In this document: in pieces, positions 34,791-50,049 of the stretch | Position numbering within the stretch: position 1 is the stretch's first letter | How the letters are laid out: the number at the start of each line of letters is the position of its first letter | NCBI GenBank assembly: GCA_900088475.1 | Contig: FLMG01002540.1 | Span: 63,814-127,813 of the forward strand | From: Hyphochytrium catenoides | Lineage: Eukaryota > Protista > Hyphochytriomycota | Reading direction: 5' to 3' | DNA: 64,000 nucleotides | The notes under the pieces: generated by a model | Database searches by the model: none | The model's input: the letters and a program-made list of their open reading frames with translations, nothing else | What the model was told of the DNA's origin: nothing | Program-made: the position numbers and the translations under genes

Positions 34791-37699
34791 TTATATGGAC
34801 GACTCTGCCATCAAGTGCTGGAGATGACCAGCTTCTTTTTCTAGCAGCTCCTGGTAGGTCCCGCTGTCAATGATTCTTCCTTCTTTTATGATAAAGATTA
34901 CGTCCGCCTTCTTAATCGTTGTTGAGCGATGGGCAATGACCAGCACTGCTCGTTTCCTTTCTCTAATAACCCTGTCTAGTGCATCTTGCACTAAACGTTC
35001 GTTTTCTCCATCCAAACTGCTTGTCGCCTCATCGAAAAGGAGGATCTGCGGATTTTTGAGAACAGCGCGCGCGATAGCAATTCGTTGTTTCTACAAATCA
35101 AGGATGATCAGAACACGTGTCGGTCACATGATTGTGACAGGTTCAGCTTTGGAGCCTGGGATTGTATAGCGTGCGAAGAGGACTGAAGATAGATGCGGAA
35201 GAAGAGGTGAGGTAGTGCTCTGGTACAATGAAAGATTAAGCAGAAGTGGGTAGTCGCTCTGACCTCCAGAGCGTGAAGAGACAAAAACGTGCAATACGTT
35301 GAAGGAGCTTTCCGCTACCTGGCCTCCTGAGAGCTGCAATCCTCTCTCTCCAACTTCCGTTTCGTATCCATTTGGCAGCTCTTGAATGAAGTCATGCGCG
35401 TTAGCCTGTTTAGCAGCCTTCTCTACGTCCTCCTTGGAAGCGGAGGGATGGCCATAAAGGATATTCTCGTAGATTGTACCAAAGAAGAGTGCTGGCTCCT
35501 GCATAAAGAGGTACGATGAGGAAGGTAAAGTGGCAAGCCGATGTTGAGCAAGATGATGAAAAGAGTAGAAAGAGTAGACGCTACTGCCAGGGGCACAGAC
35601 CGCGGGTTGCTAACAGTACTCCCGTAGTAGCTCGTCTAGACTGATAGCCGGTGGAAAGACCCATAACATGCACAGTCGCCAAAACCCGTCGTTTCTATTC
35701 ACCTGTTCCTTCCACTCTAGTCTTTGCCCTCATCAATCTCTGTCTTTCTCACAACTCACCTGGCTGACCACGCCTATCTGGTCCATGTACCAGCTCCTAT
35801 CAAGAGTACTTATCTCGACGTCGTTCATAAGAATGCTGCCCTCAGAAGGTTCGTATAGCTGAGTAAGAAGCTTAGCAACTGTCGACTTTCCAGCGCCACT
35901 GGGGCCTACCAGGGCCACGACTCTGCCAGGAAGGAGCTTAAAGCTGACATTATCTAGAGCTTTCAGCCCTCTTCTTGTCTGGTAAGAGAAGGAGACATAT
36001 TTGAACTCAAGCGACAGAGCAGGAGAAGAAGTCTTGCCGAGTTCCGCTGATACGGACTCTGTTGAGAGTATTCTGCCCTCTCCCTTCTTACTTTTCGGTC
36101 GCATTTCTAGGATAGAGAAGAGCTCCTCACTGCAGCCCAGTACTCTCTTAACATCGCCATAGCTTCTTCCTAAACCCGCAAACCCCACTCCAACCATGAC
36201 GGAGTACATAGCAAAGGATGTTAAGGTGCCCACTGTCAGGCTCCCACTATTCACCAGCCTGGATCCAGTGAATAAGACAGCCAAAAACGACGAGTTCACT
36301 GTGAAGTTTAGCGACGACAAAAAGACTCCTTCCATCGTCTTCCACCTTCTCGCTATGGCTGAACTTTGCTCTATCAAGCGAGAGAAGGTTCTGCACTCGT
36401 CGTTCTCTCTGGCAAACATTTTCACTGTTTGGATGTTTGCTATCTTCTCCTGAGCAAAGGCAGCAGTCGCAGCCACTTGATTCTGATAACGCTTGGACAT
36501 TCTGCTCACTCTCTTACCATAGAGAGCAGCCGCAGAGCCGAGGAAAGGAACAAGCGAAATAGTGACAAGAGTGAGACGCGGAGAAAGAAGGAGAAGCATC
36601 ACTGTTGCCCCTATGGCGGAATTGAGTCCTCTTATGATTCCTGTAGCATAGCTTGTGATAGAATGAGAGAGTACGTCCACATCGGCAGATATTCGAGAAA
36701 CCAGCTCTCCTGACTTTCGCGCTGCCAAGATGAAAGGGAAATGAGAGGACAAGAAGAGGGAAATAGAGCTATCAGAAATCTACGAGGACCTAGGTCAATT
36801 GGACCGAGCTTTTGCCCCACGGGAAAAACGAAGTCTAGGAGGTGGAAAGTTCGGAGAAACCTGCGACTCCTGAGAGTCGGGATCAAAAGCAAGACGGTAG
36901 CATGATAGCAATTTCTGGTACCAGCAAAGAGAGAGACGAAGGTTGCTTTTTTGAGGCACGATTAGAGAGCGAACAGGGCAACGGTTACGAGAGCACAGAG
37001 AGAGCGACGAGTAACGAGGGGTGGACGGAGCACTCAGACCAATTCTATGGGGAGGAGAAGGACAACTCACTTTCAAAGAACTTCATCTCTTGGTGCACAA
37101 TGGATTGGAACAACTTCGTGCGCAGCTTAGAGGCCACCCTCTCCGTCACCATTCCTAAGCTAGAGACGCGAACGTAGGAGGCAGCAGCACCCAAGGCAAA
37201 CACCCCCGTGGCAGCGATGAAAAAGCGTGATGGTGCCAGTCCGCTCGGGTCTTTTCCCGTGGCTATATCGATCGCTTTTCCCATAATGCGAGGGAAGCTT
37301 AGATTTGTTATGCTGTTCACCATCAGGGCAAGGCCACCAACAAGCAGGTGAGTTGTTTCTCCCTTGAGCGTGGCAAGAACCCGGAGAAAAATGTCCGAAG
37401 AACTTAGAGCTCCCGATGCGGTGGGGGTGCCTGAGCAAAGACGCGAATAACGGACAGCGGACTTAGTCAAGGGATCAGGCTGGGGACCGCCGAGACGCAG
37501 AGAAAATGAGGAGCACGGTAGAGTACGTCCGAGGAGACCAAGCTAGATGTCTGTCTGGGAAGTGTCGGCTGAAGTTAGAACTCCTAAACGCTAAGGTGCT
37601 GACTATCGGAGCAGACTAAAGAGATTTATTGGTGGTCTGTCCGCGCATCGAGGTGGTTGGGGGTTACTTACTCTCTGATTCATCGTCCTGCGCTGCCAT
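34791..37699 (-). CDS. ABC-B half transporter, ABCB10/MDL1-like (5' end uncertain)
   Basis: TMD with [39 protein letters not shown]. Walker [11 protein letters not shown]-loop VSQ|EPALF, signature LSGGQ|KQRIAIARA, Walker [13 protein letters not shown]-loop IAHR. Confidence 0.9.
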
Positions 37700-40025: not shown

Positions 40026-43000
40026 CTAAGAGGATGATCCCTTCCTGATCTTTTGAGCTAGTTTCTCCAGTTTACTTTCTAGCCTCTCTCTTTGTGTTTC
40101 TAGCTCAGACAGCTGCATCTCGTCAGCCTGTTCCTGGGCACGTGCTGGGTTTTAAGACGACCCGAGAAAAAGAATGTGAGGAGGGAACCCGGCAGCACGT
40201 CGCTTGTGTCCATAATTTACCTTCAGCCAGCAGCTCTTCAAGCTTTGCTGTCCTTCTCTTCTCTTCAGCCACTCTTCGGTTTAGCTCTTGGCGCTTCTCC
40301 TCTATGTCTTGGGTGTCATCGGACTAGTAAAGAAGGCGAACAAGATGGCAAGCATATTAGGCTTGAAAGGAAACGTAGCAAACGACCACCTTAACATCAG
40401 GGTGGGCACGAAATGGCAGGGACTTCGGGACAGGCCACCATACACAGGAGCCAGGACAGCGAGAAAGCTTGACACAATATTACAGCAAGCACGTAGAAAG
40501 CAACGCACCAAAGCTTCTTTTGCTTAAGCCTTTTGATGAAGAGAGATAGTGAGCGCCAGAGTGGAGAACAGGACGGAACAGATCGAACAAACACTGGTGA
40601 GAGGAAGCGCGCAAGTCACCTTGGACCATCTCCATTCAGGCCTCTCCTGCAAATAGTCCAGTACACCGCTAGAAGCAACTACTGAGGTGATTGCATCGAC
40701 ATTCTTTTCCGCCTTCTCCATTAGTTCAATAAAGTGCTGATAATAAAACGAAGCAGGTGGATGAGTGTCCGGATGTCGATGGGACGTACATGGACCTATG
40801 GATGGATGGGACGAGCTGGAAGGAGACAAGGGATATTTCCTCACTTGCCTTGATCTGCGCTGCCTTTCTGGCTTCTTCCTTCTCGAGATCCAGAATCCGC
40901 GTCATAACGCTATCTGAAATAAAAAAAGCACCGAGCGCTTCTAATAGCTAACACATCCGAGTAAGACAAAGATAGTGAGTCGGACAAGGACCATGGATGT
41001 TAAGAGGGATGGGGGAGCACCGAGCCCCTGTGTGACCGTAGTCAACGGTGCCGTGCCCAGAGTTAATAAACAGATTATGATCAGAGCCGCAAAAACGTGA
41101 ATTTGAACCATGAGCACCTAGTAAGGCCCAAGGCTACACGTCGCACCCGACACAGAGAACTACAGGGAGAAATGACAAGGGAGGATGGGACAGCAGAAAG
41201 TAACACCTAGCAGGGAGCACACCTCTGAGTGGAAGTCTGGGCCCACGTCCATGTCCATAATAGCTTTCCGCCCAGCCATGGTTTCCTTCGTTATAGTCGT
41301 ATAATACTGGATGTCGTCTATTGATTTTACAAGCCTCTCCAACTCATTCGATGAGTCTTTTCCTGTCATTCAAAGAAGAAGAAACACATAGAGTAGGTTA
41401 ATAAAGGTATGAGTTCAGCGCAACTAGCCAAAGGCCCGGAGTGCAGATCTGCAGGAAACCAGATCTTTTTTTTTATGCTGGTTGGTGTCGGTGGTGAACT
41501 GGAGAATAACTGTAAGGGGGTTCACTGACTGTTATACCTTTTGACTTTCTCTTCTCGCCCACTTGGAGGCTTCTGCTTCCCTTCCCAGCTCGATGCTTAT
41601 CCTCATCGCTATCCTCTTGGCGGGACTGATGGCCACATAGTGCAGTTTCATTTCACAAGCGCAAGAAAGATGCCCAGCAGGAGAAGTTAGACAGCTGGAT
41701 GATATGGGTAGTGACGATTGGAAGACTCCATCACAACTCCACCCCTTAACACTATGGATAAGAGAGTTATCTAAAGAAGAACTTGGACGAGTGGTATCGT
41801 GACTATCTTGCTGAAAAGAAAGGTACCTCTTCTGCTTCCCTTGATTTCGCGGCAGCCGCCCTTGCTGCGCGTGCCTGAGCTGAGCCCGCCTCGAGAATCC
41901 TATATTCTATTGCCTTCACCGCATTATCTGCTTCTAATAGCAACGCGTTGAACCGCTGCAGTCAGAGGAGTAAGTCTACCCACCGTGACTGAGCGGAGGA
42001 GCAGGAGGTGGTGGGCGAGCACTCACACCACGGTATATTTTTCTTAGGGGTAAAAAATCTCCAGACACGTGGCAGCAAATGAGTGGCGCAAGTATTTACC
42101 GAGTTCTGTGCAGCGATCGTGTTCGCTTCTTCCTCGCACTTTCGTATGTAGGTCACACAATCGCTTGGTAATTCTTCCGGAAGTCGTCGGTGCGTGAACT
42201 GGGAAAAGCAGCATAAATACATATTAAAAACGGTTAGTGCTCAGGTATCTCGCATCGTGGCCTCTTAAGCGAGCTGCGCAAGAGAAAGATTCGAAATGGC
42301 TGCCAAAGCGAGTTGTTGGCTGCCAAAGCGAGTTGTTGGTCAACTCCATACTTTAGACAGAAAAAGACCCTTACAGGTGATAGCAGAATAGGCTCTGGTT
42401 GTTGCGAAAATATTGCCTTCCGAGTCTCTAGTTTCTCTCTCAGGTCCCGCAGCTTATCGTGCACCTCCTCCAGCGTTTCTCCTTCATTCCCTAACAAGGA
42501 CACAGCAGTATGGCCCCGCGCTACAGCAGGATGATAGCCAATAAGACAAGAAATTAGGGACATCGCTAACGTTACACGGCAGTCCGATTCCTTGTGTCGA
42601 TTGAATTTCCTATTCACCTTCGGCCAGTAGCTCCTCGAGATCCCGAGTTCTTCTCCGCTCTACACTAAGCCGCCTCTCTAGCTCCTGTTTTTCGCCCTCG
42701 AGCCCTTGGGCTTTAGCGTGTAGTGCCGCCAACTCCTGAAGGAAGCAATAGCAGCAAGAAACGAGCAAGGAAATGTCTAAGCTATGAGGCTACAACGCAG
42801 TAAGAACCAAAGAAAGATTACTCAAAAAATGAGAAACAACCTTTCGTCTTGCAGCGTTAATCGTACCTGTTCCAGCCCCACTCGATCCCTTTGAAGACTG
42901 AGCTGTCCGGCGAGAGCAACTCCTGAGGCACTCATCATTTCCTCTATTGTATTCTCCAGTTCTTTTCTCTCTGCGTGCGTCCTCCCAACCACCGCTTTGG

Positions 43001-46000
43001 CAGCCGATAGTTCTTTAGCAAGCATATCCACTTGCTCTCGAGATGCCTTCAAGTCATCAGAAAGGAGAAGGATCCTCCGTTCCTGCTCTTGGAACAGTGA
43101 CATGTAATTTTCCTTGGTTTCTAGGAGCTCCTAATTTGGGCAAAGAGGTGTGAGACAGCGCTTTGAAAAGTAGCCTGATGACATGCGCAGGGTTACACTA
43201 CTGGTGAGAGATGTAGTGTGACCCTAGAAGCGATAGACACGATGAGGGTAAAACAAAGCTCTTACATCTCTTTGGGCTTTCAGAGCCTTCCGCTCCACAT
43301 CCTCGACCTCCATTCTCTTGCGGGTGGCCTCCTCTTTAGCTGCCAGCTTTTTGTATGAAACTCGCAGCTCGTCGTATTCTGTAGCTAGCCTATCGTTTTC
43401 GGCATTGCTGACAAAGCAGAGAGACATGATTAGATGGTGCAGAATACAGGGCGATAGGAGCTCGTGACATCTTCTTGTGGGGTCTGCAAGAACCAATAGA
43501 ACAAGCAACAGCGAGGAGAAAAAGAACGATTTTTGAACGAGAACATCTCCTATACAGAACAGAAACCTCTGAGCTACAGAACCTCTGTTCCCCATCCAGT
43601 GGTTGACAAAGAAGAACACCTCCTAACTTGATTATGGAGTCTCAGTCTCCACCTTTGGACTTACAACTCTGCCAATTTGGCCTTGTAAGCTTCCTTCTTC
43701 TTTGTCATCTCTTCCAGGTCTCGCGCGAGAGATGCTGCCTCCTTCGTAGAATTCTTATAGTCCTGAGAGATGGCCGCGTTGTCTGACGTATGGATTGCCG
43801 ATAGGCCATCATGGTAGATGAATGATAGCGTGTGAGACAATCAAAGCAGAATATTGAGGTCACTGTCATGTGACATGCTAAGGACAACTAAGTGCCGGGG
43901 GAAAAAGGGCAAGCGGTGACAAACCTTCTGAGAGTTTTTGACGGAGCTTTTCACTGGCGGCTAGCTGGCCCCTTAGATCCTCCTCTCTTGCCTCCAGCTT
44001 GCTGATCCTTCTTCTTTCCTTCTCCAAGGACTGTGAACACATGTCAGAGCAAGTTCTAGTTTTCACATTGCCGCTTTTACGAACAAGCGATCCTTTTCTC
44101 TATACTGTCCTAGATCCAAATAATGCTCTTCCTCTCACTGGGCAAGGACAGTGGCTCTCCGTCTAATTCGAAGCCCCACCTCATGGATAGAGTCAGCCTT
44201 GCGATATGCCCGCTGCAGGTCACTGTCTTTTGCATCTAACTTCCGTTGCAAATTGGCATTCTCCTCCATCAGTGCTTTATTAGCGTCTTCACATGATCTC
44301 GCTGCAACGTCCTGGACAATGGACGATGCCACAAAGTGTGAAAATTGCTTGAAAACCTCAGACACTGCACGATAGCCTCAAACATCGGATGGAAGGAGAT
44401 ATGAGCGACAGAGGGAGAGAGCTTGAGAACGCGGCTCACCGAGATGGGGATCCATCTCATTTGTTAGGAGTAGCAATTAGAAAAAAGTGCTTGCTTGGCA
44501 GAGTTATTAACAAAGTAGCTACAGTTCTGAAAGGCAAAACTTACAGCCCTGTCTGCTTCAAACTGAAGCTCGTCCCTTTCTTTGTCCAACTGGATAAGTC
44601 TCTCTCTTTCTTCCCTGAGAGCTTGCTCCTTCTTCTTTAGTTCATTCTGAAGATCGCAAATTTGTTTGCGAAGGGCTTCCACCTACGCAGACAAGTCAAA
44701 CGCAGCATAAAAGGTCATAAGAGGTTCCGTCAAGCAGAAGTCAACTCGCTGGGAAAACTGTGAGAAGCCCCACAGAGCTAGATGCATCGTCGCACATCCA
44801 TTTCAGATTAAATCTCCGTAAATGCATGGGATAGGTGAGTAGTGAGAACCTGGCTTTCATGAGAATCCTGCTGCTCTTGTAGCCGATTGAGCTTCCGCAT
44901 AAGCTGTCCTCTAGTCTGGTCCAATTGGACAAAGAGAGACTTTAGGCGTTCGACCTCTTCGTCTTTTCCCTGAGTGCTGTCCATGCATTTTCTCAGCTCT
45001 TCTTCCGCTGCGTGAAGCCTACAGCGATGACGTAGGAGTTAGGGCATACCGAGAGCAGTTACGGTATCGAGAGCTTTATTGTATGTGATCCATTGGCATG
45101 GACTTACTTGTCCATCACACTCTTTTGAGCGGCTTTTGCGGATTTGAGTTCGTGCTGCAGCTTGGAGTTCTCATTTTCCATGTTCAGGAGGCGGGATATC
45201 CTCACATTCTGGTCCACCTCTAGGGACTGCACCTTGGTCTCGAGAGACTCCGACTAGCCGTGCAGGAGACCATTAGTACATGTTCTTATTTGGCAGCCCA
45301 AAAGAAGGAGACGGGGCCAGTGAAATATGGGAATGGTTGTCATAGGACTAAAGGGATAGATACTTAGAAAAGGGATAGATACTTAGAAAAGGGACACAAT
45401 ATTGCTCCTTGCCATACATAGGCTTTGATTTCTATGATTTCCGCAGCTTTCTCTTCAAGGGCAGCAAGTGCCTCCTCACGCTCCTTCCTAAGGGTCAAAA
45501 GCTCCGTATACGCTTTCCGAAGGTGCTCTCGGGTTTCTTCTGTCTCACGGTAGACCTCGTTGTCTTCTACAGCCAAAGGACATTCAATCGACGGATAACT
45601 GTTACGAAGAACCATCGCGCACAAGCCTAAACCTATTCCCGTGCTTACCGGCCCGACGCCTTAATAGCTCATTTGAAGCCTCATTCTTAGCAGCTCTTTC
45701 AACGTATGTCTCCATCCGTTTCCTGTAGACCTCCTCCCTCGTCTCCTGGCCCTAGTTTTAGAATGGTAAAGGTTGAGACAGGGATTAGGGGCGATGGCAA
45801 AGGATGAGTGGTGGAGTCTTATGCGAGCTTATTCAAGGTCGAACCTTTTGAAGAAGAACCTTGATTTGATCATCCTTGTTATTCAGCGAGGTCTCCAGGT
45901 CACCCAACGTTGCCTAACAGAGGGAAGCAAATCATGGTTTGAGCGGCAGGGTATGTAGCAAATGGCAACGAAAGGCGCCCGATAGATAGAAAACGCAAGC

Positions 46001-49000
46001 ACAGGTATATCTGTCAGAATACAGTGAAGTCACTATCACTCTTGACAATTGTGGTACCTCAAGTCTTCTTCTTGTATCCTCGCTGTCAGCGAGCAACGCC
46101 CTATATTCTTGCGCTGTGAATTCCACAATTTAGGAAGTCAGAATGTACCTCTATCTATTGGGGTGTAGGGGGTTGAGAGGTAACGGAGGCATAGGTAGGC
46201 CAGACAGTGAAGCAAGGCCACGATAAGTGTGGCACAAACGAGCGTAATGGGCAGGGTGGTGGTTGTGGCGCAGATGTGACGGTGAAATCCCTATCGTGCG
46301 AATGCTGTACCGTGAGCCTCAGAGCTTTCCAGATCAGATTGTAACCGATGCACGTCCTGTTGCAATGCGCTCACTTTCCTTTCTAAATCCCGGCAGACGG
46401 AAGCCATATGAGAGTATTCTCCACGCTCTCCTTCCAAAAGGCGTTCACGTGACGTCCAAGCTACGTATTGTAGGTGGTGAAAGTGTGTTAAAAGCGATGG
46501 GGCTAAGGCAAGGTAAGAAGAGATTGACCTACTCTGGGTGGACGTCAGGTCCAAACTTTCTTGCAAGAAAGAATTCTCCTTCGACAGGCGTTCTACACGC
46601 TCCTTTGACCTCTATACATTCAATTAGAGGTACTTTTGATCGCCAGCTAAGTATGCTTCTTATCACCTTCAATTCCATGTGGACAGACGCCAACTCCTAG
46701 AGTTATCAAGAGCGAGATAAGCAGGGTCAACAACGCTTGTGAGAATAGCACACAGCATTAGCGGCTCTGTCATTTCATGCCTATGGTACCTTTCGCAGAG
46801 CCTCCATCTTGGTGTTTAGCTCTCTTATCATGTCAACGCGGGCGTCCTTTTCCTCTTCTTCCTCCTCAATATCTAACGGGTAGTTTGTTCAGTCTATAGT
46901 CACTTTTTCCATGCGATATATCAGGCGCTCTTACTCTTTTCTTCCTCCGATGGCGACCTTGTCGCCATATCCGTCGCTGACGAAGCTCGTTTCTCCAAAG
47001 TTCCCACTTTATCCATCAGTATCTCTCTTTGAGCTCCGACTCTGTCTAATTCTCCTAGAACGCTTTCCAATTCTTTCTTTAGCATCTCCTTCTCCTCCCT
47101 AAGAGAGTCCGCAGCGTTTCGAAGGCTCTGTATATTAGACGTTGACATGTCTAAATTCTCTTTGTACGTAACCGCGAGTCCCTCCAGCTTGACAGTTTTC
47201 TGAAAACAAAGCGGAAAAAGTGGGAGTGATAAGTATGGGCAGTCGGGACACGAACGGACGTTCTGTCCTACCTTCTCCTCCTCAGCCAAGGTCTCCTGGA
47301 CCTGCGCCAGTCGGTGCTTCAGGTTGTCCACTAATGATTCCAAAGACCTAGTGCGGTGAGTTGGAGGCGGCGCGTATATGTGCGGGGATCACGGGGAAGG
47401 GCAAAGATTCGAGAGCTAATGTGAGGCAGATAAAGTCAAGTCCTTTGCAAATAACTTACGCGATCCTTTCCTTCTCAATTTTGTTCAGTTCTTCCTTTCC
47501 TAATATCGTGTCGGGATCAAAAGGGTACGTGGCCCAATATACAAGATTTACTATTGCTCACCTCTAATATCTGCTAAGCCGTTGTCGACTCTTGCTCTCG
47601 CCAGGTCGCTTTTCAACTTGCTGATCTCCTGCTGGTGTTGCCTGAGCGAATCACACAGAGCCTAGCAGAAGTACGGACTAATTGTCATTATCGGAGCTCA
47701 ATGTTCTAGCAATGAGATGCGTCACTGTCTCCAGATACCCAATGCCTCCTTCTTCCGTTAGACTCATCCAGTATCCCTCTCTGATAAGCTGGAATTTGCG
47801 GCTACCAGCGAAATCCATTTACCTTATTCTCTGTCTCCAGGTAATGGATCACTTGTTGGTTTGATGATGACTCGCCTTCTCGGTTTTGTGTTGAAACACT
47901 TTGGTTGCTTTCTGCACTCTTCTGAGTGCTCTTTCCCTGAGTAGATCTCATGGACACTTCACTTTCAGGCAAAGATGGAAGAGTCGGATCTCTGGATGGT
48001 ACTCGAGTTCCACCTCGGAGCCCCTGTCTTTGGATTCTTCCAGTGAGGTGCCGAACTTCTACTTGAAGCTTCTCATTCTGCTCTCTAAGTTGCCTGTGTG
48101 GTAAAGGAAAGTCAGATAAACGCCCCTGCCTAAGGTAAGCTATGGGGTAGCATAGCTCCCAAGTGAAAAGGAGGAAATGGAGTGAATGATTGAGTAATTA
48201 GCCCGAGCTCGTTGTTCGTCATCTCACTTCAATTCCTTGATGATGTCGCTATTCTCATATTTGAACTGCCGAAGAGAATCTAACTCTGCGTTCATCTCTG
48301 CCATCTCCTGTTCGTTGATTGCAAGCTGCTCCGTCACAAATTCTAATTGCTCCTTCAAGCTTAGAATGCGATCCCGCTGATTATCCTAGTCAAAACGCCA
48401 TGTCAGTTAGACCGCTAACTCAAGCCTGCTTCAGGCGCTGCAGGAAACACTTTTACGTCTCGTGGTGCTCCGAAGTTCTTACAAACTGGCGACCGTCTAG
48501 TCACTCCAGTTCACCTGCTTCGACCCAAGGTGACCATGCTTCCGATATTTTATAACAATCACCGATTATCTCTCTTTTCTTCGTCCGTCACGTTCACAAA
48601 TGGCGCACTTGTTCTGTAGGTTTGGAGAGCCATCCTTACCAGAGATGTTGACGATGCGACATCAGCCGTGTTCTCAAGTCTATAAATTTCCTTTTCTCTA
48701 TTTTGAACTTGCGCCGCCAACGTCTCGTTAGAGGCTATCAGCTTCTTGTTCTCCTCTATGAGATCCCGAATCTGCTGGCCCATCTTCGATAGCACTTCAG
48801 CTCCCGTGGTCGACAAAAAGGGGACGGAAGGGTCCATTGTAGTGGGTGGCGGTACCCGAGGCTTCGCAAGATCGCTCAGGCTGATTCCCTTCTCAGTATA
48901 TTCAGTTAGTTTCCGCAGGAGAGGGCAATGCTTCGAGCGCGAATAGGAAGTCTATAATGTTAGCTAGCATGGGGACCCAGACAGAGGACGTCGGAGTTGA

Positions 49001-50049
49001 GGAAGAAGCTGAAAGGAAAGTAAGGTTGGATAAGAGCTTCGGGAGAATAATGGGCAACGGCGAACCCAAAGGCGTATGCAAAAACGCCGAAGGGACAATG
49101 CACCTGGAAAGGAGGATAGCACAATGGGTGATCACAATCTAACCTTTCCTTCCGTTGCCTTTGCCAGCGTGACTTGGTTGGCCTTCACATAGAATGTCGG
49201 TATCCCCTTCGTCACGGTCTCAAGCTTGCTTTTCAGTCTTTGCAGCTCTGTCTCCTGTTGTTTAACGATATATTTTTTCTGGTTGCTAACAAAACGTGTC
49301 TCTAGTAGTTGCGCTTCCAGTTTCTTCATATCAATCTGTCTCTGCCGTTCTCGAGCGTCGTACTCCTCCGAGAGTTTGATCATGTCAAGATGGAGCTAGA
49401 TAAAGGGAGTTACACCGCGGGGCAGAGAGAACCAGAGAAAGAGTATATAAACGCTAGCAATATGAGGAGAAGGAACAGCTCGCTAAGACGAGATGCTGAC
49501 GGACCAACAAATTGCACTATCAGTAAGGCAGAAGGAATAGTAATAGGGCCGCGGTGAGCTCAACGACCTCTGAACAAATATGCGTCCTCGTCCGATGAAT
49601 GGTGAAACTTTACGTGTCGTTCAGATTGCTTGCGAGCGCACTAAGACCAATTCTTACCGTGTTGATTTCTCTGCGCAGCCTTGCGTTTTCCTTCCGGAGT
49701 GGGGCGATTTGATGTCTGAAGTTATTTGCTTCACTTTCAAAGTTCTGGTGCTGTTCGAGGAGTTTCTGATACGACTCGGTGGTGACAACAAGGTCGTTGA
49801 GCAGCCTCTCAACTAGCAGGACAGACTCTAGACCGAAGCTCTGAAGGTGGAAAGCCATGTCGATTATCACATGGCAAGTGGCAAGAAGAGCGCAAGACGC
49901 CATGAGCCACCTCTCGGGCTGCGTAGGAGGATCTCTGCAAGACTTACCTCATGGTAGTTCATGGCAGCTAGCTTCGTCCTGAGAATGGCTTGCTTTTTGC
50001 GAAGCAAGGCCTCTGGAGGCGAGCTCGGATGTCCCATTTCCTGAACCAT
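40026..50049 (-). CDS. CEP135: Centriolar coiled-coil protein CEP135/BLD10 (~30 exons)
   Basis: N-terminus LRTKLAAMNYHESFGLESVLLVERLLNDLVVTTESY...PLRKENARLRREINTLHLDMIK. Also QVQNREKEIYRL, LKEQLEFV, QLDKERDELQ and C-terminal LEELLAEARAQE. Exons join in phase from ATG 50049 to TAG 40026. Confidence 0.85.
42297..42339. repeat. 20-bp intronic tandem duplication
   Basis: TGGCTGCCAAAGCGAGTTGT x2. Confidence 0.9.
45350..45394. repeat. 19-bp intronic tandem duplication
   Basis: AAAGGGATAGATACTTAGA x2. Confidence 0.9.

Follow-up and report, generated by a model that had tools for sequence, protein, structure and literature searches.

The characteristic site of CEP135/Bld10 is the cartwheel spoke tip or pinhead, and its binding partners are SAS-6 and microtubules. 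[quoted passage not shown] Bld10p makes up the distal spoke, with its C-terminal part overlapping the tail of SAS-6 (PMC4113102). Chlamydomonas Bld10p deprived of its C-terminal 35% gives shorter cartwheel spokes and often eight triplets (PMC4113102). The human gene additionally codes CEP135mini, composed of the first 233 residues and a 16-residue tail, which results from alternative polyadenylation in intron 6 and represses centriole duplication (PMC6724517). The window analysed here, a stretch of 64,000 nucleotides from Hyphochytrium catenoides to which all positions refer, carries a gene of this family in which the exon ending the conserved C-terminal block appears twice. The two copies (exon A and exon B) are separated by a cassette of seven further exons (c1 to c7), and exon B is followed by the last exon (L).

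The gene model (40026..50049, minus strand, as for all exons described below) comprises 36 exons and 35 introns, with a CDS of 4821 nt coding for 1606 aa. It runs from an ATG at 50049 to the stop codon at 40028-40026, with the frame kept throughout and no internal stop. Introns measure 55-296 nt (median 142) and 34 of the 35 are of the GT-AG type, the sole exception having the donor GCAAGT. A 30-nt micro-exon (exon 12) is predicted at 46667-46696, between introns of 93 and 55 nt. Downstream of the gene, a 165-aa open stretch of the minus strand (37048-37542) has, by eye only, the look of an ABC-transporter membrane domain.

Exon 2 (49658..49840) codes for the conserved CEP135/Bld10 amino terminus domain, which in the family measures about 70-90 residues and is the microtubule-proximal end. 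It directly matches the PDB chain 9qzc_q, annotated "Centrosomal protein, putative" (E 9e-8), and 118 proteins of the representative library, about 12 of which are 900-1460 aa long. A word search from one library match added seven proteins of 1050-1400 aa, and the library match P0092 in turn matches 7bji (human "Centrosomal protein of 135 kDa", E 5e-28) as well as 5fcm ("Basal body protein"). A profile built from this exon and 12 orthologues, to which it is 39-46% identical, recovers 9qzc_q (4e-23), 5fcm "Basal body protein" (3.5e-11) and 7bji CEP135 (3.5e-6). The exon has one copy genome-wide, the genome searches covering a 61-Mb assembly. The rest of the protein is very divergent: pairwise search detects the amino terminus only, Pfam gives weak generic coiled-coil matches on the exons and no family specific to this gene, and the library and word searches returned no relative above ~50% identity nor any protein from this genome. 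The carboxyl terminus was compared by means of a profile of the last ~300 residues of 17 orthologues, whose order is colinear with that of the exons. Exon 24 (43665..43782) lies at profile positions 3-44 (E 1.1e-4), exon 26 at 95-137 (a weak match) and exon A at 190-224 (E 9e-5). Exon 24 is a degenerate counterpart of the conserved MT(R/K)ENQA block, with which the C-terminal region begins, the MTRENQA motif itself being degenerate in this gene. The length fits the CEP135/Bld10 range (roughly 1000-1650 residues) with the cassette and exon B (1606 aa) or without them (1309 aa). By its N-terminal matches to 9qzc_q, 5fcm and 7bji and its colinear C-terminal profile, the gene is identified as the organism's single CEP135/Bld10 orthologue, in agreement with the earlier note, which had named it CEP135/BLD10.

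Exon A (42618..42735, 118 nt) is assigned by profile as the copy in the ancestral position, at the end of the conserved C-terminal block. It is the top profile match among 216 open stretches (E ~1e-4, 16 bits), colinear after exons 24-26. Exon B (40221..40323, 103 nt) is a diverged copy of the last ~30 codons of exon A; it matches profile positions 195-224 with 7 bits, a poorer fit to the family than that of exon A, and ends at the same profile column. Both exons start in phase 0 and end in phase 1, with the donor GAA G|GT(G/A)AAT in each. Their Smith-Waterman score of 87 is the best of 630 exon pairs in the gene. The runner-up pair scores 50 and involves much longer exons, and shuffles score 28.7 +/- 5.1 (z ~11 for the real score). 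In the genome, exon B matches itself and exon A (E 0.002) and nothing else. Judged by these scores, exons A and B are true paralogues, well above the coiled-coil background. The paralogy proposed in the earlier note is thereby borne out, and its shared phase-1 donor, exon coordinates, translations and phases were all reproduced.

The two copies are identical at 18 of 34 residues, the last seven included. Their DNA shows saturation at synonymous sites (pS 0.7-0.8) against a pN of 0.23-0.32, with identities of 18/29, 22/29 and 11/29 at codon positions 1, 2 and 3. The last seven codons carry four silent differences and no replacement, and the seven residues that they encode vary among orthologues. 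Synonymous saturation combined with low pN argues that the duplication is old and that both copies have been kept under protein-level selection; exon B therefore is, or long was, translated. The introns that flank the two exons may be weakly alike: the similarity ranks 4/595 downstream and 2/595 upstream, and was not recovered by MAFFT global alignment. The arrangement departs from that of mutually exclusive exons, as the copies differ in length, are separated by 2.4 kb and seven coding exons, and can both be used in one mRNA that stays in frame.

The cassette region carries a clear coding signal. With a codon model whose training set was exons 1-26 only, the ten later exons that were held out (c1-c7 and B among them) all receive positive scores, highest in the chosen frame, and the scores of the cassette introns are all negative. 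An independent dynamic-programming gene finder, which combines codon, donor and acceptor scores, gives a best path of 241 bits, compared to 228 for the present gene model and 84 +/- 14 for shuffled sequences (about 11 SD). It places c2, c3, c5 and B at identical boundaries and retains the core of each of c1, c4, c6 and c7; it departs from the gene model at four boundaries and proposes two additional mini-exons with poor support. The existence of an in-phase exon chain was rejected as coding evidence. A valid GT-AG path is also allowed in 60 of 60 shuffled sequences, so that such a chain says nothing in itself and the scored path was used instead. With these two measures, the statement of the earlier note that the segment between the exon copies is in frame and resembles coding sequence is upheld. 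No cassette exon has a match in Pfam, no paralogue of a cassette exon was found in the genome, where c5 and c7 match only themselves, no Atlas look-alike of c5 or c7 was found, and a metagenome scan with c5 gave no relative. The region contains no Rfam family and no plus-strand ORF above 79 aa.

The chain c1-c7 amounts to 788 nt (~263 aa), and addition of exon B defines a skippable unit of eight exons, 891 nt and 297 aa. The earlier note had counted eight in-phase exons and ~255 aa between A and B: seven exons lie between the copies, and the number eight is reached when B is counted. Exon c1 (42375..42490) opens with a GNEG hinge, continues with a short predicted coiled coil that is out of register with exon A, and has a proline-rich end; its donor may be at 42375 or 42417. 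The c1-c2 intron holds a perfect 20-nt tandem duplication (42297-42336). Exon c2 (42100..42198) contains Pro and Cys and is not coiled-coil-like, and c3 (41827..41955) corresponds to an Ala-rich helix. Exon c4 (41538..41625), which leads from phase 0 to phase 1, codes for a charged, low-complexity linker and has a weak acceptor placed at 41625 or 41613. It is followed by c5 (41223..41362), by c6 (40849..40947, acceptor at 40947 or 40913) with its GC-AG intron (donor AAG|GCAAGT, 40843-40848), and by c7 (40620..40736, donor at 40620 or 40642). The boundaries of c2, c3 and c5 are the same in both models. At the c5/c6 boundary (41163-41223, 40913-40947) two frame-compatible options exist between which the sequence does not decide: either c5 is short and c6 long, or c5 gains nine codons and c6 starts ~34 nt later. 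A candidate relationship of c1 to the last exon, as a diverged copy, was rejected (score 27, shuffle p 0.22, not significant).

The last exon L (40026..40144) has a phase-1 acceptor and codes for 39 residues followed by the stop codon. Its junction Ala is completed by the phase-1 base supplied by A or B and precedes RAQEQ, so that joining either exon to L reads ...LEELLAE-ARAQEQ..., whereas joining A to c1 gives "GN" instead of "AR". Heptad periodicity, examined around the junctions only, is unbroken where A or B meets L and shifts by two at the junction of A with c1, the site of GNEG. The earlier note had related the last exon to the CEP135 C-terminal block. This is supported by profile for exon A; only inspection by eye shows a likeness of L to the tails of the orthologues, in the "AR" that directly follows the block, and a short orthologue-tail profile, which has no power here, did not match L. 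Skipping of the unit keeps the frame, 891 nt being 297 codons and A and B both ending in phase 1. The suggestion that a splice from A to L would yield a canonical-like protein is thus sound in sequence terms: the product would have the size of an orthologue, be colinear with the family and keep an unbroken heptad register.

Mucochytrium quahogii and Epipyxis sp., which are stramenopiles, are represented among the 17 orthologues compared, and some of the others are presumably animal and ciliate proteins, to judge from their appearance. All 17 are contiguous at the point of the cassette, with nothing inserted there, and each has the conserved block once only, followed directly by "xR..." with an invariant R (17/17). 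From 13 to 255 residues follow the block. The protein without cassette would have 1309 aa, compared to 1309-1456 aa in the closest orthologue group. The absence from all 17 orthologues identifies the cassette and exon B as a lineage-specific insertion, as the earlier note had anticipated, in which the sequence of B reconstitutes the ancestral junction to the last exon.

The preferred explanation, to which a probability of roughly 0.55 is given, is that this segment is a constitutively included, lineage-specific insertion in CEP135/Bld10. The exon that ends the conserved C-terminal block would have been duplicated long ago in this lineage, and ~2.3 kb with seven further coding exons would now separate its copies. 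The normal mRNA would include everything and code for the 1606-aa protein. In this protein the canonical rod would reach the end of exon A and then break at the GNEG hinge. The next ~263 aa would be only partly coiled coil, made up of a short coil, a break rich in proline, a linker of charged residues and a helical part, before re-entry through exon B brings back the ancestral 'LEELLAE|AR...' junction to the last exon. Other species have the conserved C-terminal end near SAS-6; here this end would thus be kept and tethered to the rod by means of a lineage-specific insert. Constitutive inclusion and any structural role of the insert are presumed from these features, and an effect of the insert on centriole geometry is conjecture.

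Some observations speak against this explanation. The boundaries of a number of cassette exons are ambiguous, the fit of exon A to the profile is better than that of exon B even after a very old duplication, and removal of the cassette gives exactly the orthologue size and an unbroken register. A also shares with B the last seven residues and the phase, as would be expected if some transcripts still joined A to the last exon. The gene would then produce two regulated isoforms, its A donor being spliced either to c1 (long form, 1606 aa) or to the last exon (canonical-like form, 1309 aa), with exon B as an adapter that provides both forms with the same C-terminal junction. This is a tentative alternative, clearly less probable than constitutive inclusion. 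The skip preserves the frame and the junction sequence is identical in both forms. The short form is colinear with the 17 orthologues, has their size and keeps the register that is shifted by two when A joins c1. The identical seven-residue ends, maintained despite four silent changes, fit two copies that abut the same exon, and the weak likeness of the flanking introns could reflect shared splicing signals, although it is absent from the global alignment. The splice features point the other way. Joining A to L means skipping eight exons at once across an intron of 2473 nt, eight times the largest of the gene, all of whose introns are at most 296 nt. The competing acceptor of c1 is strong (97th percentile of the acceptors of the gene) and close (127 nt from the donor of A), whereas that of L is weak (23rd percentile) and is paired across a 76-nt intron with a strong donor, that of B (97th percentile). 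No convincing inverted repeat that could pair the A-c1 and B-L introns and loop out the cassette in the RNA was found. Neither the splice sites nor the intron size suit frequent skipping, and together they lean towards constitutive inclusion and against a switch. A word search of the protein collection with the open stretch containing exon A returned no transcript-derived fragment. The more specific proposal, that a stage-regulated eight-exon skip toggles CEP135 between the canonical rod and a form with a ~260-aa non-coiled module near its SAS-6-proximal end, is slightly more doubtful still. Read-through of the donor of A (42609-42617, minus strand) meets a stop after two codons (GE-stop), so that retention of the 127-nt intron would give CEP135 without its conserved tail, a cheaper path to a short isoform than the eight-exon skip.

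Two further explanations dispense with the long protein. The short form could be the only one, the 2.47-kb interval being one large intron in which the cassette and exon B are decaying or are chance open frames. That a frame-consistent GT-AG path is also found in all of the shuffled sequences, and that the cassette exons are devoid of any homologue, Pfam family or Atlas look-alike found, would fit this proposal, which is nevertheless quite improbable: the combined codon and splice score stands ~11 SD above shuffles, every cassette exon is positive and best in its frame whereas every cassette intron is negative, the pattern of exon B is that of purifying selection and not of decay, and the 2473-nt intron would again exceed all others by far. 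Least likely of all is the presence of two transcription units, with CEP135 ending just past exon A and a downstream gene, started at an ATG inside the A-c1 interval, that encodes the cassette and a copied CEP135 tail. Read-through of the A donor does give ...LLAEGE-stop, the frame of c1 is open back to an in-frame ATG ~25 codons upstream (open stretch 42659-42237), and in some orthologues only 13-14 residues follow the block. Yet the stop and the ATG would be only ~45 nt apart, the A-c1 interval is non-coding in all three frames under the codon model, the A donor ranks well (77th percentile in the gene), the c1 acceptor is excellent, and CEP135 would lose the R that follows the block in every one of the 17 orthologues. 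The probability that is left after these readings is assigned to errors of the model.

Constitutive inclusion remains the preferred reading. As it stands, the predicted H. catenoides protein is a lineage-specific length variant of a protein whose tail already varies widely. A natural insertion of 297 residues just before the conserved C-terminal end, placed between two selectively maintained copies of the same heptads, is a ready-made variant that could serve to probe the tolerance of this region of the spoke for additional sequence that is not rod. Were the insertion switchable by splicing, it would offer a route to CEP135 isoforms unlike that of human CEP135mini. If the skip were moreover stage-regulated, one gene would vary the architecture of the cartwheel spoke tip, with the duplicated exon as a shared-junction adapter.

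The protein has in common with human CEP135 and Chlamydomonas Bld10p the N-terminal domain, the long coiled-coil rod and the colinear C-terminal region, and differs from them by the 297-aa insert that is found just before the last ~39 residues and is bracketed by the duplicated exon. Length variation at this end is usual among the orthologues too; here, in contrast, the extra sequence precedes the re-created end of the block instead of being appended to it, and the resulting 336-residue tail is the longest in the set. Exon duplication is a known source of alternative or mutually exclusive exons. The present case likewise involves one exon copied within a gene, perhaps with parts of its introns, and with phase and donor kept, but its copies are non-adjacent, of unequal length and not interchangeable, and both are usable in one mRNA. 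CEP135mini provides a precedent for long and short proteins of differing activity produced from one CEP135 gene (PMC6724517). The hypothetical short form considered here would differ from it both in mechanism and in product, keeping the entire rod and the carboxyl terminus and being devoid only of the internal insert.
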